Source: Selaginella moellendorffii
Lineage: Eukaryota; Plantae; Lycopodiophyta
Assembly (NCBI RefSeq): GCF_000143415.4
Contig: NW_003314553.1
Coordinates: 1 to 13,383 of the forward strand
DNA: 13,383 nt
Direction: 5' to 3'
Made by a program: the position numbers and the translations under genes. Below, piece after piece: positions 1 through 13,383 of this stretch. Every line of letters begins with the position of its first letter. The stretch's first letter is position 1. Under the pieces are notes generated by a model, which saw only the letters and a list, made by a program, of their open reading frames with translations, searched no databases and was not told where the DNA came from.

Positions 1-281
1 CACCCTAAACCCTAAACCCTAAACCCTAAAACCCTAAACCCTAAACCCTAAACCCTACCCCTAAACCCTAAACCCTAAACCCTAAACCCTAAACCCTAAA
101 CCCTAAACCCTAAACCCTAAACCCTAAACCTAAACCCTAAACCCTAAACCCTAAACCCTAAACCCTAAACCCTAAACCCTAAACCCTAAACCCTAAACCC
201 TAAAACCGGCTAAACCCTAAACCCTAAACCCTAAACCCTAAACCCTAAACCCTAAACCCTAAACCCTAAACCCTAAACCTA
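1..281. repeat. Terminal telomere tract (CCCTAAA)n, C-rich strand on +
   Basis: About 40 tandem CCCTAAA units from the window start, with occasional variants (CCCTAAAA, CCTAAA, AAAACCGGCTAAA at ~202-214). A C-rich + strand at position 1 fits a left chromosome end. Confidence 0.97.
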
Positions 282-404
282 CGACCAGCGACATCAAGCT
301 CTCCTTGCACGCTCGCGCCGCTCTAGCGACGCCTGTCGACGGGCCCCCCTCGCCTTCAAGCTGCCTTACACACTCCACAGTGCACAGCTAGGCTTGGGGG
401 ACAT

Positions 405-418
405 CCTAAACCCTAAAC
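405..418. repeat. Short internal telomeric stretch CCTAAACCCTAAAC
   Basis: Two telomere units inside otherwise unique sequence, in the same orientation as the flanking tracts. Confidence 0.85.
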
Positions 419-595
419 AGGTGATGGATGAAGCTCCCGCAGACACACTCCCCCGAGTGATTACGTGCTGGAGACGCTCCCCGAACCTCGGTTCGTTCCT
501 GGTCAGGGCCAAGCTCCCTCCGCGAGCTTAGCCACGTCTTGTACCACACTTTGCAAGACATGGAAGCATATGTTTGCATCTTTCTCCGCGTACCC

Positions 596-1031
596 GATGA
601 CTCCCAGGGTCTGGCCGATGGACTTCAGGTATGTCCAAAGTCACTCCAGGCCACCCCCCTTTCGAGTCAACGCCCGGTCAACGCGGAGTCAACGGTCAGA
701 ACGGAATATTCCCCAATATTCCGACTGTATCCCTGTTGACCGAGTCAAAACGGCATATACCGTTGGATTCCGCTCTTCCTTCCGATCGTGAATATGTGAG
801 TTTCAACTCTGAACTCCACACACGATTCGTTGAAAAGCGTGTATTCCGTTAAAACGGTACCGCTCCTTCGACATCGGCGATGCACGCCGACAGCTCGCGG
901 GATGGCTCTCCCCTGCACCACCGCTGGACTTCGGGTATGTATGAGTGACCTCAGGCCCTCCACCATCCCAGTCCACACACGGTCAACGCGGGGTCAACGG
1001 TCAACGACGGAATATTCTCAGAATATTCCCT
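596..1031 (+). repeat. Degenerate direct repeat, ~130 bp x2 (~596-722 and ~901-1031), period ~305 bp
   Basis: Collinear blocks: TGGACTTC(A/G)GGTATGT (619, 925), CAGGCC, CGGTCAACGCGG(A/G)GTCAACGGTCA (675, 980), ACGGAATATTC...AATATTCC. Confidence 0.85.
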
Positions 1032-1306
1032 GCAAAGTGGACCACGTTTTTCGTCGCCGGGTACGTACGAGTGACACAAGCATTGTGGACGTAACGCATG
1101 CATCATATCATGCTGCGTTTACAAGTTATCTTGCGTCAAAGGTACGTCACCCGCCGGCCGAACGCTTACTGTCTTCGGCGATCCGCCGAAGTCATTCTCC
1201 GCGACTACCACTGCTGTGGAGTAACCAACACCAGCTGTGCTACGTTCGCAACCTCGCGAGCCAACGCTGCCACGCCACTTCGCATGGCCGCCACACGGAC
1301 TCGCGC

Positions 1307-1330
1307 CACGTGACAGAGCCAAAATATAAG
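1307..1330 (+). promoter_or_regulatory. Possible core promoter upstream of the hammerhead (G-box plus TATA-like)
   Basis: CACGTG at 1307-1312 and TATAAG at 1325-1330, about 40 nt upstream of the ribozyme. Motif match only. Confidence 0.3.
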
Positions 1331-1366
1331 TAGAGTCGGCACCGAGCTAGGGTTAGGGTAGACACT

Positions 1367-1424
1367 AGACGACTACACCCGGCTGATGAGTCCCAAAAAG
1401 GACGAAACCGGTCTCGGGTTGTCT
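1367..1424 (+). ncRNA. Type I hammerhead ribozyme (minimal, palindromic stem III)
   Basis: Core CUGAUGA at 1383-1389. Stem II GUCC (1390-1393)/GGAC (1400-1403) with loop CAAAAA. GAAA at 1404-1407. Stem III is the palindrome ACCGGU at 1407-1412, with the GUC triplet at 1411-1413 (predicted cut after C1413). Stem I is CCGG (1379-1382)/UCGG (1414-1417), extended after a UACAC bulge by AGACGAC (1367-1373)/GUUGUCU (1418-1424). Confidence 0.93.
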
Positions 1425-1445
1425 CTTGTCCTCTCCCTCGCTCAC

Positions 1446-1465
1446 GAATGAATGAAAATTCATTC
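1446..1465 (+). other. Perfect 8-bp hairpin with GAAA (GNRA) tetraloop
   Basis: GAATGAAT-GAAA-ATTCATTC. Confidence 0.75.
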
Positions 1466-1583
1466 CCTCGCATCCTCTACTTGCTCTCGATCACGCCGTT
1501 TCGACAACGGCACACGGAGAATGTGGATTGCACAAAGTGGTGCCGCGATCTCGCCGGATTGCAGCACTGCGGGGTGTCTTTGA

Positions 1584-1883
1584 CCCTAAACGCCTAAACG
1601 CGCCTAAACCCTAAACCCTAAACCCTAAACCCTAAACCCTAAACCCTAAAACCGGTTAAACCCTAAACCCTAAACCCTAAACCCTAAACCCTAAACCCTA
1701 AACCCTAAACCGGTAAACCCTAAACCCTAAACCCTAAAACCCTAAACCCTAAACCCTAAACCCTAAACCCTAAACCCTAAACCCTAAACCCTAAACCCTA
1801 AACCCTAAACCGGTAAACCCTAAACCCTAAACCCTAAAACCCTAAACCCTAAACCCTAAACCCTAAACCCTAAACCCTAAACC
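1584..1883. repeat. Internal telomere tract (CCCTAAA)n with CCGGT-containing variants; probable earlier chromosome end
   Basis: About 300 bp of CCCTAAA. It starts with degenerate units (CGCCTAAA, CGCGCCTAAA at 1591-1608) and has variants ACCGGTTAAA (1651-1660) and CCGGTAAA (1710-1717, 1810-1817). Confidence 0.96.
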
Positions 1884-2164
1884 GCTTCGAGGGCATCGAT
1901 CCGAATTGGCTGGGCCCCCCATGCCATGCTGGCACCGTGCGTGCCTTGTCGAAAACGGCACACCCTTGCGACCGCTGGGCGAAAGGGGCAAACCCCGAGA
2001 GGTCCTTGCACCTCCTGTCACTGGGGAGGGTGCCCCCCACGAACACGAACCCAACGGCGCCAGTCCCACGCGAAACGCACGCACGGTTCGCGAGAAAACG
2101 GCCCCCAACGCCCGCATTCTCCATTATTCCGAGAGAATATTCCCTCCACTACTTAAATTGTGCC

Positions 2165-2264
2165 AAAAAGAGGTGGCTCCGGGTGGGTCTCGACCCAGGG
2201 ACCTATTTGAGTGGACTTGTTTTTAGATTGGGGGTCTCTGCCACTAGGCCTCTACCACCTCTCC
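2165..2264 (-). ncRNA. Candidate ~100-nt Pol III small RNA with vault-RNA-like/tRNA-derived architecture, copy 1
   Basis: Minus strand: GGAGAGGUGGUAG-AGGCCUAGUGG (A-box-like, 2241-2251)...GGGUCGAGACCC (B-box-like, 2185-2196)...GCCACCUCU-UUUU. There is a 9-bp terminal stem AGAGGUGGU/GCCACCUCU and a T5 run at 2165-2169. Confidence 0.55.
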
Positions 2265-2283
2265 GTTACATATTTCGTGTCGG

Positions 2284-2341
2284 TTAAATTTATTGGGTTT
2301 GTGGGGGAGGGGGTTTAACTAGCAAAGGGCGATTATGGGGA
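2284..2341 (-). promoter_or_regulatory. Putative upstream promoter for the small RNA: TATA-like plus USE-like; repeated in each unit
   Basis: On the minus strand, AATAAATTTAA lies at about -30..-20 (2284-2294) and TCCCCATAATCG at about -77..-66 (2330-2341), resembling the plant snRNA USE RTCCCACATCG. Confidence 0.4.
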
Positions 2342-2481
2342 GCGCTTAGTGCGATTAAGTGGGGCTTAAGTTGGGGCAATCGCGGCCGTCGGTGCGGTGG
2401 GGTGGTTGACCGGCGGCGATGAGTTTGACCGGCGGTCCCCGTGACACGTGGCTAGGGCTAGGGTCTGGATATGGGTTTTGC

Positions 2482-2765
2482 GCGAGTGGGCAAGATCCAT
2501 GGCTCGGTTTGCGGTGGGACTTGAACCGTTGGAAAGCTTGCGTGAGTCCACCCGTTTCCACAGAAACGGATCTGGATTTCGTCGCTCCACCGGCCCGCAC
2601 CATTGCGATGGGTTTGACGCTGGGTTTTCGAGCGAGTGGGCAACATCCATGGCTCGGTTTGCGGTGGGACTTGAACCGTTGGAAAGCTTGCGTGAGTCCA
2701 CCCGTTTCCACAGAAACGGATCCCGATTTCGTTGCTCCACCGTCCCACACCATTGCAATGGGTTT
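2482..2765 (+). repeat. Internal direct duplication within each unit (~134 bp x2, period 150 bp); recurs in every copy
   Basis: GCGAGTGGGCAA(G/C)ATCCATGGCTCGG...CACCATTGC(G/A)ATGGGTTT at 2482-2615 and 2632-2765, with a few substitutions. Confidence 0.95.
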
Positions 2766-3413
2766 TGTGCTGTTCCCGTTGCCATATCTCGTGGACCGTG
2801 GGCCCCCTTTCGCCCTTGGGCACATGGGAGCAACTGGGGCGGTGCGCGCAACTGGCCCATGTGGCCAAGTACATTTTTCCATGTCCTGGGCGCCTGCTTT
2901 TGTGGTTTTTCCCACGGAAGAAGATGCGTCCCACGTGGCGATCCGTGTGCCCGCCCGCACTCCGGCACCAACGGGGCCGGCCGGCGTGACGCCCCGGTCG
3001 CGGCCGTGCCAACGGATCGCGGGCCCCATGCGTGGGCTGCCGCCGGGAGTGCATCTCACTCTCGAGGAAAACACCGCACTGGCGCTCGGGCCTGCACTGG
3101 AACGCGACCCCAGGAGCGCCGTGGCGAAGCCCGCGTCGAGGGCATCGATCCGAATTGGCTGGGCCCCCCATGCCATGCTGGCACCGTGCGTGCCTTGTCG
3201 AAAACGGCACACCCTTGCGACCGCTGGGCGAAAGGGGCAAACCCCGAGAGGTCCTTGCACCTCCTGTCACTGGGGAGGGTGCCCCCCACGAACACGAACC
3301 CAACGGCGCCAGTCCCACGCGAAACGCACGCACGGTTCGCGAGAAAACGGCCCCCAACGCCCGCATTCTCCATTATTCCGAGAGAATATTCCCTCCACTA
3401 CTTAAATTGTGCC

Positions 3414-3513
3414 AAAAAGAGGTGGCTCCGGGTGGGTCTCGACCCAGGGACCTATTTGAGTGGACTTGTTTTTAGATTGGGGGTCTCTGCCACTAGGCCT
3501 CTACCACCTCTCC
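3414..3513 (-). ncRNA. Candidate Pol III small RNA, copy 2
   Basis: Same sequence as 2165-2264. Confidence 0.55.
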
Positions 3514-4662
3514 GTTACATATTTCGTGTCGGTTAAATTTATTGGGTTTGTGGGGGAGGGGGTTTAACTAGCAAAGGGCGATTATGGGGAGCGCTTAGTG
3601 CGATTAAGTGGGGCTTAAGTTGGGGCAATCGCGGCCGTCGGTGCGGTGGGGTGGTTGACCGGCGGCGATGAGTTTGACCGGCGGTCCCCGTGACACGTGG
3701 CTAGGGCTAGGGTCTGGATATGGGTTTTGCGCGAGTGGGCAAGATCCATGGCTCGGTTTGCGGTGGGACTTGAACCGTTGGAAAGCTTGCGTGAGTCCAC
3801 CCGTTTCCACAGAAACGGATCTGGATTTCGTCGCTCCACCGGCCCGCACCATTGCGATGGGTTTGACGCTGGGTTTTCGAGCGAGTGGGCAACATCCATG
3901 GCTCGGTTTGCGGTGGGACTTGAACCGTTGGAAAGCTTGCGTGAGTCCACCCGTTTCCACAGAAACGGATCCCGATTTCGTTGCTCCACCGTCCCACACC
4001 ATTGCAATGGGTTTTGTGCTGTTCCCGTTGCCATATCTCGTGGACCGTGGGCCCCCTTTCGCCCTTGGGCACATGGGAGCAACTGGGGCGGTGCGCGCAA
4101 CTGGCCCATGTGGCCAAGTACATTTTTCCATGTCCTGGGCGCCTGCTTTTGTGGTTTTTCCCACGGAAGAAGATGCGTCCCACGTGGCGATCCGTGTGCC
4201 CGCCCGCACTCCGGCACCAACGGGGCCGGCCGGCGTGACGCCCCGGTCGCGGCCGTGCCAACGGATCGCGGGCCCCATGCGTGGGCTGCCGCCGGGAGTG
4301 CATCTCACTCTCGAGGAAAACACCGCACTGGCGCTCGGGCCTGCACTGGAACGCGACCCCAGGAGCGCCGTGGCGAAGCCCGCGTCGAGGGCATCGATCC
4401 GAATTGGCTGGGCCCCCCATGCCATGCTGGCACCGTGCGTGCCTTGTCGAAAACGGCACACCCTTGCGACCGCTGGGCGAAAGGGGCAAACCCCGAGAGG
4501 TCCTTGCACCTCCTGTCACTGGGGAGGGTGCCCCCCACGAACACGAACCCAACGGCGCCAGTCCCACGCGAAACGCACGCACGGTTCGCGAGAAAACGGC
4601 CCCCAACGCCCGCATTCTCCATTATTCCGAGAGAATATTCCCTCCACTACTTAAATTGTGCC

Positions 4663-4762
4663 AAAAAGAGGTGGCTCCGGGTGGGTCTCGACCCAGGGAC
4701 CTATTTGAGTGGACTTGTTTTTAGATTGGGGGTCTCTGCCACTAGGCCTCTACCACCTCTCC
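4663..4762 (-). ncRNA. Candidate Pol III small RNA, copy 3
   Basis: Same sequence as 2165-2264. Confidence 0.55.
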
Positions 4763-5911
4763 GTTACATATTTCGTGTCGGTTAAATTTATTGGGTTTGT
4801 GGGGGAGGGGGTTTAACTAGCAAAGGGCGATTATGGGGAGCGCTTAGTGCGATTAAGTGGGGCTTAAGTTGGGGCAATCGCGGCCGTCGGTGCGGTGGGG
4901 TGGTTGACCGGCGGCGATGAGTTTGACCGGCGGTCCCCGTGACACGTGGCTAGGGCTAGGGTCTGGATATGGGTTTTGCGCGAGTGGGCAAGATCCATGG
5001 CTCGGTTTGCGGTGGGACTTGAACCGTTGGAAAGCTTGCGTGAGTCCACCCGTTTCCACAGAAACGGATCTGGATTTCGTCGCTCCACCGGCCCGCACCA
5101 TTGCGATGGGTTTGACGCTGGGTTTTCGAGCGAGTGGGCAACATCCATGGCTCGGTTTGCGGTGGGACTTGAACCGTTGGAAAGCTTGCGTGAGTCCACC
5201 CGTTTCCACAGAAACGGATCCCGATTTCGTTGCTCCACCGTCCCACACCATTGCAATGGGTTTTGTGCTGTTCCCGTTGCCATATCTCGTGGACCGTGGG
5301 CCCCCTTTCGCCCTTGGGCACATGGGAGCAACTGGGGCGGTGCGCGCAACTGGCCCATGTGGCCAAGTACATTTTTCCATGTCCTGGGCGCCTGCTTTTG
5401 TGGTTTTTCCCACGGAAGAAGATGCGTCCCACGTGGCGATCCGTGTGCCCGCCCGCACTCCGGCACCAACGGGGCCGGCCGGCGAGACGCCCCGGTCGCG
5501 GCCGTGCCAACGGATCGCGGGCCCCATGCGTGGGCTGCCGCCGGGAGTGCATCTCACTCTCGAGGAAAACACCGCACTGGCGCTCGGGCCTGCACTGGAA
5601 CGCGACCCCAGGAGCGCCGTGGCGAAGCCCGCGTCGAGGGCATCGATCCGAATTGGCTGGGCCCCCCATGCCATGCTGGCACCGTGCGTGCCTTGTCGAA
5701 AACGGCACACCCTTGCGACCGCTGGGCGAAAGGGGCAAACCCCGAGAGGTCCTTGCACCTCCTGTCACTGGGGAGGGTGCCCCCCACGAACACGAACCCA
5801 ACGGCGCCAGTCCCACGCGAAACGCACGCACGGTTCGCGAGAAAACGGCCCCCAACGCCCGCATTCTCCATTATTCCGAGAGAATATTCCCTCCACTACT
5901 TAAATTGTGCC

Positions 5912-6011
5912 AAAAAGAGGTGGCTCCGGGTGGGTCTCGACCCAGGGACCTATTTGAGTGGACTTGTTTTTAGATTGGGGGTCTCTGCCACTAGGCCTCT
6001 ACCACCTCTCC
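5912..6011 (-). ncRNA. Candidate Pol III small RNA, copy 4
   Basis: Same sequence as 2165-2264. Confidence 0.55.
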
Positions 6012-7160
6012 GTTACATATTTCGTGTCGGTTAAATTTATTGGGTTTGTGGGGGAGGGGGTTTAACTAGCAAAGGGCGATTATGGGGAGCGCTTAGTGCG
6101 ATTAAGTGGGGCTTAAGTTGGGGCAATCGCGGCCGTCGGTGCGGTGGGGTGGTTGACCGGCGGCGATGAGTTTGACCGGCGGTCCCCGTGACACGTGGCT
6201 AGGGCTAGGGTCTGGATATGGGTTTTGCGCGAGTGGGCAAGATCCATGGCTCGGTTTGCGGTGGGACTTGAACCGTTGGAAAGCTTGCGTGAGTCCACCC
6301 GTTTCCACAGAAACGGATCTGGATTTCGTCGCTCCACCGGCCCGCACCATTGCGATGGGTTTGACGCTGGGTTTTCGAGCGAGTGGGCAACATCCATGGC
6401 TCGGTTTGCGGTGGGACTTGAACCGTTGGAAAGCTTGCGTGAGTCCACCCGTTTCCACAGAAACGGATCCCGATTTCGTTGCTCCACCGTCCCACACCAT
6501 TGCAATGGGTTTTGTGCTGTTCCCGTTGCCATATCTCGTGGACCGTGGGCCCCCTTTCGCCCTTGGGCACATGGGAGCAACTGGGGCGGTGCGCGCAACT
6601 GGCCCATGTGGCCAAGTACATTTTTCCATGTCCTGGGCGCCTGCTTTTGTGGTTTTTCCCACGGAAGAAGATGCGTCCCACGTGGCGATCCGTGTGCCCG
6701 CCCGCACTCCGGCACCAACGGGGCCGGCCGGCGTGACGCCCCGGTCGCGGCCGTGCCAACGGATCGCGGGCCCCATGCGTGGGCTGCCGCCGGGAGTGCA
6801 TCTCACTCTCGAGGAAAACACCGCACTGGCGCTCGGGCCTGCACTGGAACGCGACCCCAGGAGCGCCGTGGCGAAGCCCGCGTCGAGGGCATCGATCCGA
6901 ATTGGCTGGGCCCCCCATGCCATGCTGGCACCGTGCGTGCCTTGTCGAAAACGGCACACCCTTGCGACCGCTGGGCGAAAGGGGCAAACCCCGAGAGGTC
7001 CTTGCACCTCCTGTCACTGGGGAGGGTGCCCCCCACGAACACGAACCCAACGGCGCCAGTCCCACGCGAAACGCACGCACGGTTCGCGAGAAAACGGCCC
7101 CCAACGCCCGCATTCTCCATTATTCCGAGAGAATATTCCCTCCACTACTTAAATTGTGCC

Positions 7161-7260
7161 AAAAAGAGGTGGCTCCGGGTGGGTCTCGACCCAGGGACCT
7201 ATTTGAGTGGACTTGTTTTTAGATTGGGGGTCTCTGCCACTAGGCCTCTACCACCTCTCC
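7161..7260 (-). ncRNA. Candidate Pol III small RNA, copy 5
   Basis: Same sequence as 2165-2264. Confidence 0.55.
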
Positions 7261-8409
7261 GTTACATATTTCGTGTCGGTTAAATTTATTGGGTTTGTGG
7301 GGGAGGGGGTTTAACTAGCAAAGGGCGATTATGGGGAGCGCTTAGTGCGATTAAGTGGGGCTTAAGTTGGGGCAATCGCGGCCGTCGGTGCGGTGGGGTG
7401 GTTGACCGGCGGCGATGAGTTTGACCGGCGGTCCCCGTGACACGTGGCTAGGGCTAGGGTCTGGATATGGGTTTTGCGCGAGTGGGCAAGATCCATGGCT
7501 CGGTTTGCGGTGGGACTTGAACCGTTGGAAAGCTTGCGTGAGTCCACCCGTTTCCACAGAAACGGATCTGGATTTCGTCGCTCCACCGGCCCGCACCATT
7601 GCGATGGGTTTGACGCTGGGTTTTCGAGCGAGTGGGCAACATCCATGGCTCGGTTTGCGGTGGGACTTGAACCGTTGGAAAGCTTGCGTGAGTCCACCCG
7701 TTTCCACAGAAACGGATCCCGATTTCGTTGCTCCACCGTCCCACACCATTGCAATGGGTTTTGTGCTGTTCCCGTTGCCATATCTCGTGGACCGTGGGCC
7801 CCCTTTCGCCCTTGGGCACATGGGAGCAACTGGGGCGGTGCGCGCAACTGGCCCATGTGGCCAAGTACATTTTTCCATGTCCTGGGCGCCTGCTTTTGTG
7901 GTTTTTCCCACGGAAGAAGATGCGTCCCACGTGGCGATCCGTGTGCCCGCCCGCACTCCGGCACCAACGGGGCCGGCCGGCGTGACGCCCCGGTCGCGGC
8001 CGTGCCAACGGATCGCGGGCCCCATGCGTGGGCTGCCGCCGGGAGTGCATCTCACTCTCGAGGAAAACACCGCATTGGCGCTCGGGCCTGCACTGGAACG
8101 CGACCCCAGGAGCGCCGTGGCGAAGCCCGCGTCGAGGGCATCGATCCGAATTGGCTGGGCCCCCCATGCCATGCTGGCACCGTGCGTGCCTTGTCGAAAA
8201 CGGCACACCCTTGCGACCGCTGGGCGAAAGGGGCAAACCCCGAGAGGTCCTTGCACCTCCTGTCACTGGGGAGGGTGCCCCCCACGAACACGAACCCAAC
8301 GGCGCCAGTCCCACGCGAAACGCACGCACGGTTCGCGAGAAAACGGCCCCCAACGCCCGCATTCTCCATTATTCCGAGAGAATATTCCCTCCACTACTTA
8401 AATTGTGCC

Positions 8410-8509
8410 AAAAAGAGGTGGCTCCGGGTGGGTCTCGACCCAGGGACCTATTTGAGTGGACTTGTTTTTAGATTGGGGGTCTCTGCCACTAGGCCTCTAC
8501 CACCTCTCC
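8410..8509 (-). ncRNA. Candidate Pol III small RNA, copy 6
   Basis: Same sequence as 2165-2264. Confidence 0.55.
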
Positions 8510-9658
8510 GTTACATATTTCGTGTCGGTTAAATTTATTGGGTTTGTGGGGGAGGGGGTTTAACTAGCAAAGGGCGATTATGGGGAGCGCTTAGTGCGAT
8601 TAAGTGGGGCTTAAGTTGGGGCAATCGCGGCCGTCGGTGCGGTGGGGTGGTTGACCGGCGGCGATGAGTTTGACCGGCGGTCCCCGTGACACGTGGCTAG
8701 GGCTAGGGTCTGGATATGGGTTTTGCGCGAGTGGGCAAGATCCATGGCTCGGTTTGCGGTGGGACTTGAACCGTTGGAAAGCTTGCGTGAGTCCACCCGT
8801 TTCCACAGAAACGGATCTGGATTTCGTCGCTCCACCGGCCCGCACCATTGCGATGGGTTTGACGCTGGGTTTTCGAGCGAGTGGGCAACATCCATGGCTC
8901 GGTTTGCGGTGGGACTTGAACCGTTGGAAAGCTTGCGTGAGTCCACCCGTTTCCACAGAAACGGATCCCGATTTCGTTGCTCCACCGTCCCACACCATTG
9001 CAATGGGTTTTGTGCTGTTCCCGTTGCCATATCTCGTGGACCGTGGGCCCCCTTTCGCCCTTGGGCACATGGGAGCAACTGGGGCGGTGCGCGCAACTGG
9101 CCCATGTGGCCAAGTACATTTTTCCATGTCCTGGGCGCCTGCTTTTGTGGTTTTTCCCACGGAAGAAGATGCGTCCCACGTGGCGATCCGTGTGCCTGCC
9201 CGCACTCCGGCACCAACGGGGCCGGCCGGCGTGACGCCCCGGTCGCGGCCGTGCCAACGGATCGCGGGCCCCATGCGTGGGCTGCCGCCGGGAGTGCATC
9301 TCACTCTCGAGGAAAACACCGCACTGGCGCTCGGGCCTGCACTGGAACGCGACCCCAGGAGCGCCGTGGCGAAGCCCGCGTCGAGGGCATCGATCCGAAT
9401 TGGCTGGGCCCCCCATGCCATGCTGGCACCGTGCGTGCCTTGTCGAAAACGGCACACCCTTGCGACCGCTGGGCGAAAGGGGCAAACCCCGAGAGGTCCT
9501 TGCACCTCCTGTCACTGGGGAGGGTGCCCCCCACGAACACGAACCCAACGGCGCCAGTCCCACGCGAAACGCACGCACGGTTCGCGAGAAAACGGCCCCC
9601 AACGCCCGCATTCTCCATTATTCCGAGAGAATATTCCCTCCACTACTTAAATTGTGCC

Positions 9659-9758
9659 AAAAAGAGGTGGCTCCGGGTGGGTCTCGACCCAGGGACCTAT
9701 TTGAGTGGACTTGTTTTTAGATTGGGGGTCTCTGCCACTAGGCCTCTACCACCTCTCC
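9659..9758 (-). ncRNA. Candidate Pol III small RNA, copy 7
   Basis: Same sequence as 2165-2264. Confidence 0.55.
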
Positions 9759-10907
9759 GTTACATATTTCGTGTCGGTTAAATTTATTGGGTTTGTGGGG
9801 GAGGGGGTTTAACTAGCAAAGGGCGATTATGGGGAGCGCTTAGTGCGATTAAGTGGGGCTTAAGTTGGGGCAATCGCGGCCGTCGGTGCGGTGGGGTGGT
9901 TGACCGGCGGCGATGAGTTTGACCGGCGGTCCCCGTGACACGTGGCTAGGGCTAGGGTCTGGATATGGGTTTTGCGCGAGTGGGCAAGATCCATGGCTCG
10001 GTTTGCGGTGGGACTTGAACCGTTGGAAAGCTTGCGTGAGTCCACCCGTTTCCACAGAAACGGATCTGGATTTCGTCGCTCCACCGGCCCGCACCATTGC
10101 GATGGGTTTGACGCTGGGTTTTCGAGCGAGTGGGCAACATCCATGGCTCGGTTTGCGGTGGGACTTGAACCGTTGGAAAGCTTGCGTGAGTCCACCCGTT
10201 TCCACAGAAACGGATCCCGATTTCGTTGCTCCACCGTCCCACACCATTGCAATGGGTTTTGTGCTGTTCCCGTTGCCATATCTCGTGGACCGTGGGCCCC
10301 CTTTCGCCATTGGGCACATGGGAGCAACTGGGGCGGTGCGCGCAACTGGCCCATGTGGCCAAGTACATTTTTCCATGTCCTGGGCGCCTGCTTTTGTGGT
10401 TTTTCCCACGGAAGAAGATGCGTCCCACGTGGCGATCCGTGTGCCCGCCCGCACTCCGGCACCAACGGGGCCGGCCGGCGTGACGCCCCGGTCGCGGCCG
10501 TGCCAACGGATCGCGGGCCCCATGCGTGGGCTGCCGCCGGGAGTGCATCTCACTCTCGAGGAAAACACCGCACTGGCGCTCGGGCCTGCACTGGAACGCG
10601 ACCCCAGGAGCGCCGTGGCGAAGCCCGCGTCGAGGGCATCGATCCGAATTGGCTGGGCCCCCCATGCCATGCTGGCACCGTGCGTGCCTTGTCGAAAACG
10701 GCACACCCTTGCGACCGCTGGGCGAAAGGGGCAAACCCCGAGAGGTCCTTGCACCTCCTGTCACTGGGGAGGGTGCCCCCCACGAACACGAACCCAACGG
10801 CGCCAGTCCCACGCGAAACGCACGCACGGTTCGCGAGAAAACGGCCCCCAACGCCCGCATTCTCCATTATTCCGAGAGAATATTCCCTCCACTACTTAAA
10901 TTGTGCC

Positions 10908-11007
10908 AAAAAGAGGTGGCTCCGGGTGGGTCTCGACCCAGGGACCTATTTGAGTGGACTTGTTTTTAGATTGGGGGTCTCTGCCACTAGGCCTCTACCA
11001 CCTCTCC
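10908..11007 (-). ncRNA. Candidate Pol III small RNA, copy 8
   Basis: Same sequence as 2165-2264. Confidence 0.55.
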
Positions 11008-12155
11008 GTTACATATTTCGTGTCGGTTAAATTTATTGGGTTTGTGGGGGAGGGGGTTTAACTAGCAAAGGGCGATTATGGGGAGCGCTTAGTGCGATTA
11101 AGTGGGGCTTAAGTTGGGGCAATCGCGGCCGTCGGTGCGGTGGGGTGGTTGACCGGCGGCGATGAGTTTGACCGGCGGTCCCCGTGACACGTGGCTAGGG
11201 CTAGGGTCTGGATATGGGTTTTGCGCGAGTGGGCAAGATCCATGGCTCGGTTTGCGGTGGGACTTGAACCGTTGGAAAGCTTGCGTGAGTCCACCCGTTT
11301 CCACAGAAACGGATCTGGATTTCGTCGCTCCACCGGCCCGCACCATTGCGATGGGTTTGACGCTGGGTTTTCGAGCGAGTGGGCAACATCCATGGCTCGG
11401 TTTGCGGTGGGACTTGAACCGTTGGAAAGCTTGCGTGAGTCCACCCGTTTCCACAGAAACGGATCCCGATTTCGTTGCTCCACCGTCCCACACCATTGCA
11501 ATGGGTTTTGTGCTGTTCCCGTTGCCATATCTCGTGGACCGTGGGCCCCCTTTCGCCCTTGGGCACATGGGAGCAACTGGGGCGGTGCGCGCAACTGGCC
11601 CATGTGGCCAAGTACATTTTTCCATGTCCTGGGCGCCTGCTTTTGTGTTTTTCCCACGGAAGAAGATGCGTCCCACGTGGCGATCCGTGTGCCCGCCCGC
11701 ACTCCGGCACCAACGGGGCCGGCCGGCGTGACGCCCCGGTCGCGGCCGTGCCAACGGATCGCGGGCCCCATGCGTGGGCTGCCGCCGGGAGTGCATCTCA
11801 CTCTCGAGGAAAACACCGCACTGGCGCTCGGGCCTGCACTGGAACGCGACCCCAGGAGCGCCGTGGCGAAGCCCGCGTCGAGGGCATCGATCCGAATTGG
11901 CTGGGCCCCCCATGCCATGCTGGCACCGTGCGTGCCTTGTCGAAAACGGCACACCCTTGCGACCGCTGGGCGAAAGGGGCAAACCCCGAGAGGTCCTTGC
12001 ACCTCCTGTCACTGGGGAGGGTGCCCCCCACGAACACGAACCCAACGGCGCCAGTCCCACGCGAAACGCACGCACGGTTCGCGAGAAAACGGCCCCCAAC
12101 GCCCGCATTCTCCATTATTCCGAGAGAATATTCCCTCCACTACTTAAATTGTGCC

Positions 12156-12255
12156 AAAAAGAGGTGGCTCCGGGTGGGTCTCGACCCAGGGACCTATTTG
12201 AGTGGACTTGTTTTTAGATTGGGGGTCTCTGCCACTAGGCCTCTACCACCTCTCC
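12156..12255 (-). ncRNA. Candidate Pol III small RNA, copy 9
   Basis: Same sequence as 2165-2264, offset by 1 because of the deletion near 11647. Confidence 0.55.
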
Positions 12256-13383
12256 GTTACATATTTCGTGTCGGTTAAATTTATTGGGTTTGTGGGGGAG
12301 GGGGTTTAACTAGCAAAGGGCGATTATGGGGAGCGCTTAGTGCGATTAAGTGGGGCTTAAGTTGGGGCAATCGCGGCCGTCGGTGCGGTGGGGTGGTTGA
12401 CCGGCGGCGATGAGTTTGACCGGCGGTCCCCGTGACACGTGGCTAGGGCTAGGGTCTGGATATGGGTTTTGCGCGAGTGGGCAAGATCCATGGCTCGGTT
12501 TGCGGTGGGACTTGAACCGTTGGAAAGCTTGCGTGAGTCCACCCGTTTCCACAGAAACGGATCTGGATTTCGTCGCTCCACCGGCCCGCACCATTGCGAT
12601 GGGTTTGACGCTGGGTTTTCGAGCGAGTGGGCAACATCCATGGCTCGGTTTGCGGTGGGACTTGAACCGTTGGAAAGCTTGCGTGAGTCCACCCGTTTCC
12701 ACAGAAACGGATCCCGATTTCGTTGCTCCACCGTCCCACACCATTGCAATGGGTTTTGTGCTGTTCCCGTTGCCATATCTCGTGGACCGTGGGCCCCCTT
12801 TCGCCCTTGGGCACATGGGAGCAACTGGGGCGGTGCGCGCAACTGGCCCATGTGGCCAAGTACATTTTTCCATGTCCTGGGCGCCTGCTTTTGTGGTTTT
12901 TCCCACGGAAGAAGATGCGTCCCACGTGGCGATCCGTGTGCCCGCCCGCACTCCGGCACCAACGGGGCCGGCCGGCGTGACGCCCCGGTCGCGGCCGTGC
13001 CAACGGATCGCGGGCCCCATGCGTGGGCTGCCGCCGGGAGTGCATCTCACTCTCGAGGAAAACACCGCACTGGCGCTCGGGCCTGCACTGGAACGCGACC
13101 CCAGGAGCGCCGTGGCGAAGCCCGCGTCGAGGGCATCGATCCGAATTGGCTGGGCCCCCCATGCCATGCTGGCACCGTGCGTGCCTTGTCGAAAACGGCA
13201 CACCCTTGCGACCGCTGGGCGAAAGGGGCAAACCCCGAGAGGTCCTTGCACCTCCTGTCACTGGGGAGGGTGCCCCCCACGAACACGAACCCAACGGCGC
13301 CAGTCCCACGCGAAACGCACGCACGGTTCGCGAGAAAACGGCCCCCAACGCCCGCATTCTCCATTATCCGAGAGAATATTCCC

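Follow-up and report, generated by a model that had tools for sequence, protein, structure and literature searches.

A type I hammerhead in a non-coding, telomere-flanked unit of Selaginella moellendorffii, a likely terminal copy of a Penelope-like element

A non-coding insert between two telomere tracts

The window, by which we mean the whole 13,383-bp stretch of DNA that was analysed, begins in telomere repeats and ends in a satellite. Its outer (distal) telomere tract (2–279, plus strand) is made of (CCCTAAA)n (TRF: period 7, 39.4 copies, 94% matches), and a unit-by-unit parse revealed a few variant units, among them ACCGGCTAAA at 205. Four further features follow on the same strand: a unique, non-coding stretch of 124 bp delimited by reading the sequence (280–403, hereafter fragment A); two C-strand telomere repeats at the next joint (404–418, from reading the junction); a non-coding unit of 1164 bp, unit B (419–1582), defined by reading and by ORF and protein searches and carrying a hammerhead near its 3′ end; and an inner (proximal) telomere tract (1583–1883, TRF and unit parse), in which irregular repeats give way to regular ones. 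Junction reading and unit parsing resolve the irregular C-strand repeats abutting unit B (1584–1608, plus strand) into CCCTAAA, CG-CCTAAA and CGCG-CCTAAA, and TRF reports a period-10 unit, CGCCTAAACG, at 1591–1609. The remainder (1884–13383), to which we assign no strand, is a subtelomeric satellite with a 1249-bp unit in ~9.2 copies, as determined by TRF and junction comparison.

With the C-strand on top at its left end, the window has the orientation expected of a true chromosome terminus, and (CCCTAAA)n runs in the same orientation on both sides of the insert, at the very start of the window. The ribozyme-sense strand is the telomere C-strand, and thus the 3′ end of unit B faces the centromere and the proximal tract. 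At their 5′ ends both inserted pieces are abruptly capped, with telomere repeats abutting positions 280 and 419.

Are the two pieces related? A homology between fragment A and unit B was considered and rejected: they share no significant similarity, and the best local alignment, between the last 22 nt of fragment A and 1339–1364 of unit B, was equalled in score by 126 of 300 shuffles. Fragment A has no notable ORF. It is probably a second, very short terminal addition, and because it is unrelated to unit B, the chain of additions is heterogeneous.

Both telomere tracts contain CCGG-bearing variant units, at 205 (ACCGGCTAAA) and at 1651, 1710 and 1810 (ACCGGTTAAA, and CCGGTAAA twice). We considered a connection between these variants and the CCGG of the hammerhead stem III and discarded it, having found no priming scheme that yields them. 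The inner tract also shows a 100-bp higher-order duplication (1703–1802 versus 1803–1880).

Satellite copies are 99–100% identical, and each unit has an internal 150-bp tandem duplication (91%). The junction with the telomere tract falls at an arbitrary point inside a satellite unit, and such a mid-unit join is as it would be after break healing. Long ORFs on both strands of the satellite gave no Pfam match. The segment around 2165–2264 resembles the 3′ half of a minus-strand tRNA; ARAGORN called no tRNA in the satellite.

What does unit B contain? Eight ORFs taken from the insert and the satellite matched no Pfam family (a sub-threshold HN match with an E-value of 0.034 was disregarded), and six ATG-initiated ORFs had no exact copy in the protein collection. 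The longest reading frame of unit B, a pseudo-ORF at 830–1330, matched just two proteins among 5.8 billion, and both are hypothetical gene models of Selaginella moellendorffii, SELMODRAFT_432087 (E-value 1e-29) and SELMODRAFT_428228. The matches are near-identical blocks (836–937, 1064–1138 and 1232–1330) that reach the stop codon just before the ribozyme; two segments of unit B, 935–1060 and ~1139–1231, are missing from the gene models. We considered reading these gaps as introns and rejected this. The first gap lies between direct repeats and does not end in AG at its 3′ side, and we read it as variation of internal modules from copy to copy. The direct repeat that bounds 935–1060, CGGGTAYGTAYGAGTGAC, suggests that this segment may have been gained or lost as a module by slippage or recombination. 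From the near-identical blocks in two gene models it follows that unit B is one copy of a multicopy S. moellendorffii family with variable internal modules. Unit B also carries an internal, imperfect 110-nt duplication (615–722 versus 921–1029, 77%).

A regular-expression scan of both strands of the insert (280–1582) found just one TATA-like motif, TATAAG at 1325–1330 (plus strand) toward the 3′ end of unit B, a putative promoter that precedes the hammerhead by 42 nt. A G-strand-like motif, UAGGGUUAGGGU (1348–1359, plus strand), lies immediately 5′ of the ribozyme. In the minimum-free-energy fold of 1335–1640 this motif pairs with the C-strand repeats at 1608–1620 (12 bp with one bulge), enclosing the ribozyme and the tail; a motif of this kind arose by chance in 75 of 5000 shuffles (1.5%). 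The 3′ tail, 169 nt from the predicted cleavage site to the telomere-type repeats (1414–1582, plus strand), folds into three local hairpins. We rejected a specially structured tail as not significant: its folding energy of −54.4 kcal/mol corresponds to a z-score of only −1.69, and 13 of 200 shuffles were as good.

Two further observations touch both unit B and the satellite. The palindrome GAATATTC, mostly present as GGAATATTCC, occurs 13 times in the whole window against 0.07 expected, with three sites in the internal repeats of unit B (704, 1010 and 1021) and one fixed site per satellite unit (2135, 3384 and so on). It resembles a pair of heat-shock-element half-sites and could reflect either common ancestry or a regulatory motif that both sequences share. 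In addition, a hairpin of the unit B tail (1466–1515, GCCGTT-TCGAC-AACGGC-ACAC) matches 1915–1963, 30 nt into the first satellite unit, at 68% over 50 nt, a marginal similarity (E-value 0.035) that is possibly due to chance.

The hammerhead motif and its class

We scanned the whole window against Rfam at gathering thresholds and obtained a single match, to RF00163 (Hammerhead_1) at 1377–1419 on the plus strand. This search had been proposed beforehand, and the match cleared the cutoff of 34 with 40.5 bits (E-value 1.6e-7), covering model positions 1–45 of 45. A base-by-base reading found the catalytic core complete, with CUGAUGA at 1383–1389, GAAA at 1404–1407 and GUC at 1411–1413. Stem II is GUCC/GGAC, 1390–1393 pairing with 1400–1403 without a mismatch, and is closed by loop II, CAAAAA (1394–1399). 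Stem III consists of the palindrome ACCGGU (1407–1412), that is, 2 bp and a 2-nt "loop", and its hairpin is sterically impossible in a monomer. The topology seen in the RF00163 alignment is that of type I: stem I is open and stems II and III are closed, stem III only nominally. Thus, the core, the perfect stem II and the bare ACCGGU of stem III are all as the original prediction, made from the sequence alone, had described them. Its cleavage position, after C1413, coincides with C17, which places the predicted cut between C1413 and U1414. Likewise, a relaxed Rfam scan of 1–3200 and the gathering-threshold scan of the whole 13.4-kb window returned no second hammerhead, in line with the single copy claimed.

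The Rfam core extends into a longer distal stem I, so that the complete type I hammerhead occupies 1367–1424 (plus strand), as delimited by Rfam, folding and class-wide stem I covariation. The stem I bulge was originally given as UACAC and as positioned for a possible tertiary contact with loop II. The placement agrees with the curated models; the exact bulge is one of three near-equivalent registers, UACAC, UAC (RF00163) and CUAC (the HH9 model). In every register a bulge containing UAC lies on the 5′ strand, 4 bp from the core in the UACAC register and 5–6 bp in the two Rfam models. The bulge is predicted to be positioned for docking on loop II, consistent with both models.

Is this structure conserved? 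We scanned a metagenome collection by pattern, requiring the same stem II and a CCGG stem III and leaving stem I unconstrained, which yielded 12 environmental loci in about five families. The resulting alignment holds nine distinct sequences, eight from these loci plus the copy in the window. In 5 of 6 stem I pairs, compensatory changes altered both sides. The covariation score was 0.381 against 0.148 for shuffles, none of 500 shuffles reached the observed value, and every shifted stem I register scored lower. Because stem I covariation exceeds both the shuffles and the shifted registers, the hammerhead class, as judged from this alignment, is under structural constraint; the evidence is cross-family and does not come from genomic copies of one element.

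At three of the environmental loci (L001, L009 and L010), an RT ORF adjoins a hammerhead that shares this stem II and the CCGG of stem III, and the RT ORFs of L001 and L009 carry a C-terminal GIY-YIG. These loci link the hammerhead subtype to Penelope-like elements (PLEs). L009 (760–3877) is an endonuclease-positive environmental PLE with RVT_1 and the C-terminal GIY-YIG, and L010 (100–4246) is an environmental PLE with RVT_1 that is listed as endonuclease-positive; in both, the same hammerhead subtype lies in a flanking repeat, with repeats of the CCCTAA/CCTTAA type ~720 nt upstream of the ribozyme. Another environmental locus, L004 (1–1518), contains a retrozyme-like tandem array in which four identical hammerheads of this subtype are spaced 607, 185 and 607 bp apart.

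Monomer, dimer or protein-assisted cleavage

How could a ribozyme with such a stem III cleave? We computed folding energies for 1367–1424 with a nearest-neighbour model; since these energies ignore the tertiary contact, folding serves as a plausibility check only. The minimum-energy monomer fold (−19.4 kcal/mol) is inactive, with CCGG at 1379–1382 pairing with CCGG at 1408–1411, and the monomer hammerhead fold lies at −12.0 to −13.2 kcal/mol. The classic double hammerhead, with stems I and III intermolecular and stem II intramolecular, reached −32.9 to −35.3 kcal/mol. This structure is nested, has a 6-bp intermolecular stem III and outdoes a pair of monomer hammerhead folds (−24 to −26.4) by ~9 kcal/mol, and it is not the predicted dimer optimum, which in the unconstrained two-strand calculation was −41.9 kcal/mol. 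ACCGGU is self-complementary: alone it is too short, and two copies form an extended helix III.

According to published work, a helix III of 1–2 bp with a small palindromic loop prevents efficient cleavage of the monomer and allows an active dimer, and the Selaginella PLE hammerheads are described as being of this "canonical" type (Cervera & de la Pena 2014, PMC4209133). The original prediction had cited as known that such hammerheads cleave poorly as monomers and efficiently as dimers; the same statement is made in that paper, and our folding energies agree with it in direction. It had further concluded that dimerisation is required, through a second transcript or a tandem source element. The structural reasoning behind this conclusion matches the literature (PMC4209133). 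The requirement itself may be too strict, because a protein-assisted route is reported for an Anolis PLE hammerhead (PMC11167929), and the telomere context had been left out of account. Dimerisation thus fits the motif as the standard published inference for a stem III of this kind, and would not be the sole route.

Alternatively, the monomer could cleave with help from an element-encoded protein or another chaperone, making dimerisation unnecessary. A precedent is a PLE hammerhead of Anolis, which did not cleave alone and cleaved with the element's protein, with core mutants as controls (2024, PMC11167929); insertion in vitro was unimpaired in the HHR-dead core mutants of that element (PMC11167929). 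Dimeric PLE minimal hammerheads themselves cleave poorly in vitro, which suggests that further factors act in vivo (PMC4209133), and in our calculations the double hammerhead was not the two-strand optimum. Against this, stem III cannot be closed by a 2-nt loop in a monomer, and the palindromic CCGG is exactly what a dimer requires and is kept in several unrelated environmental families, though these were selected by a pattern that included it. We consider cleavage that dispenses with dimerisation rather unlikely; dimerisation and help from a protein are compatible with each other.

No dimer partner lies nearby, the hammerhead being the only one in 13.4 kb; any partner would be supplied by a different transcript or locus. 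We read this copy as the retro-copied end of an element that has no partner within 13 kb, and for this locus the whereabouts of a partner are therefore probably not an issue. Source copies, or head-to-tail chains elsewhere, would supply the relevant RNA.

Origin of unit B and comparison with known systems

Where does unit B come from? For plants, fungi and protists, endonuclease-deficient (EN-) PLEs have been reported from telomeric regions (Gladyshev & Arkhipova 2007, via PMC4209133), and the PLE of Selaginella moellendorffii is given as a rare plant telomeric TE (PMC12477314). In the accepted model, such elements attach to G-rich overhangs via 3′ reverse-complement telomere repeats beside a hammerhead, and their units are 5′-truncated, capped by short telomere stretches and arranged in chains (PMC8557442; PMC6431247). 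Canonical type I hammerheads with typical helices I–III and tertiary-contact nucleotides have been described in the terminal repeats of S. moellendorffii PLEs (PMC4209133). At our locus we find (i) a chromosome end in telomere repeats; (ii) a sense strand that is the C-strand; (iii) 3′ reverse-complement repeats together with a hammerhead; and (iv) telomere caps at the 5′ ends. A PLE-type RT ORF without GIY-YIG, which also belongs to the EN- telomeric PLEs, is absent. Every testable feature of the accepted EN- PLE model is present here except an RT, and the spacing between ribozyme and repeats differs.

We consider it likely that the hammerhead is a conserved ribozyme module from the 3′-terminal region of a telomere-attached, endonuclease-free S. 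moellendorffii PLE system, and that unit B arose by non-coding retro-copying of this 3′ region, being either a 5′-truncated copy or a non-autonomous relative. With no RT in the window, it is context and the literature, and no shared ORF, that tie unit B to an autonomous PLE; as neither an RT nor any other Pfam domain was found, we describe unit B as a terminal module of an EN- PLE system and not as a complete member.

From this arrangement we infer the following course of events. A telomere would have capped a break in the 1249-bp satellite. Element RNA with degenerate CCCUAAA-type 3′ repeats would then have annealed to the G-rich overhang, and the element's RT may have extended the chromosomal 3′-OH, so that the sense strand would become the C-strand and point its 3′ end toward the centromere. 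By analogy with the published model (PMC6431247, PMC8557442), the irregular repeats at 1584–1608 probably served for priming, as a reverse-complement telomere tail encoded by the element. Telomerase would have added repeats, fragment A would have been added in the same way, and telomerase would have capped the end again. The RNA itself would be cut after C1413 only if the 2-bp stem III were extended, by a second hammerhead (in cis on head-to-tail read-through transcripts, or in trans) or by the element's protein. At this locus the ribozyme was most likely just carried along in the retro-copied tail and owes its intactness to the young age of the copy.

Alternatively, unit B could belong to a separate kind of hammerhead element, non-autonomous and non-coding like a retrozyme but telomeric, that borrows the RT of the autonomous telomeric PLE; it would then not be a 5′-truncated autonomous copy. 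The Pfam searches found no RT domain in the window, and the 958 nt upstream of the ribozyme are without RT similarity; the two Selaginella gene models, taken as other copies, run further upstream into more of a repeated, non-RT module. A truncated autonomous copy with a long 3′ UTR would look identical, and we regard the dedicated element as a possible, though less likely, reading.

A speculative extension would make unit B a dedicated telomere-attaching RNA with a ribozyme-gated priming tail. Transcription would start just behind the TATA-like motif, the G-strand-like motif at 1348–1359 would mask the C-strand tail, and cleavage that depends on a dimer or a protein would separate the mask from the 169-nt tail RNA, freeing its C-rich end for annealing to the overhang. 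We think this scheme improbable.

Telomere repeats on both sides and a fixed orientation are also produced by sequence-specific LINEs, and unit B might on this ground be taken for an endonuclease-driven, site-specific insertion into telomere repeats by a TRAS/SART-like LINE or its SINE, instead of a terminal addition. Unit B has neither a poly(A) or A-rich tail nor an AATAAA, and neither an ORF nor a LINE RT or endonuclease domain. Moreover, the transition at its 3′ end to degenerate C-strand repeats is gradual, as in EN- PLEs, and its hammerhead subtype is linked to PLEs. All of this makes such an insertion very improbable.

The hammerheads of plant retrozymes are of type III, whereas the motif in unit B fits type I models. 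Plants carry hammerhead retrozymes (PMC5680766), and L004 shows the same hammerhead subtype in tandem arrays. In the window the hammerhead is single, with no other within 13 kb; it is part of no tandem unit, and a pair of flanking LTRs is absent. We give hardly any credence to a retrozyme of the plant LTR type, or to a hammerhead repeat of the satellite type, giving circular RNAs. Finally, PLE-X, the Chlamys-related, hammerhead-bearing PLE lineage of spike mosses that targets 28S rDNA (PMC8557442), was rejected as unlikely, because it requires a fixed 28S rRNA gene site and the flanks of the insert are telomere repeats, with no rRNA match in the whole window in the Rfam scan.

A terminal copy of the EN- PLE system thus remains our preferred reading of unit B. 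Its hammerhead is of the ribozyme type already published for Selaginella telomeric PLEs (the elements in 2007, the hammerheads in 2014), here found in a non-coding terminal copy, and this locus adds no new kind of element or ribozyme. PLEs that attach to telomeres draw attention as relatives of telomerase, and among plants only a few, Selaginella included, have them. The locus is a clean example of terminal additions alternating with telomerase capping, with the ribozyme intact. It is of use for annotation, and as an additional copy for work on the role of hammerheads in PLEs.

How does unit B compare with known systems? The hammerheads of endonuclease-positive (pLTR) PLEs, for example those of L001, L009 and L010, share its stem II and CCGG stem III and lie a few hundred nucleotides beyond the RT ORF. 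They differ in the sequences of stem I and loop II, and in that their elements code for an endonuclease and have no pair of flanking telomere tracts. With the amniote HH9 and Schistosoma-type type I hammerheads (RF02275 and RF00163), the motif shares the core, loop II CAAAAA and the UAC-containing stem I bulge. HH9 has a 3-bp stem III with a 5-nt loop, and it is precisely this loop that the hammerhead of the window lacks, leaving ACC|GGU. It scored 40.8 bits against the HH9 model RF02275 in the relaxed Rfam scan, below the cutoff of 52.

The 3′ ends of the Athena/Terminon elements of bdelloid rotifers (Arkhipova et al. 2017, as presented in PMC6431247) resemble unit B in that a hammerhead fold sits close to the end and reverse-complement telomere repeats come after it. 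In the same account, Terminons stand head to tail at chromosome ends as 5′-truncated units with short telomere caps (PMC6431247). As described there, their repeats lie immediately downstream of the ribozyme, whereas the 169-nt tail intervenes in unit B; the repeats are ACACCC/TCACCC in place of CCCTAAA; and the elements span tens of kilobases and contain ORFs, in contrast to the 1.2 kb of non-coding sequence here.

The closest counterparts are the hammerheads of the EN-deficient PLEs of S. moellendorffii itself (PMC4209133, Fig. 3A). Unlike these elements, unit B contains no RT ORF; it could be a truncated or a non-autonomous copy. The species, as judged from the protein matches, and the telomeric setting are the same. 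So are, by description and not by a letter-by-letter comparison, the canonical type I fold, the 6-bp helix I, the 4-bp helix II, the loop nucleotides for the tertiary contact and the short palindromic helix III (PMC4209133).
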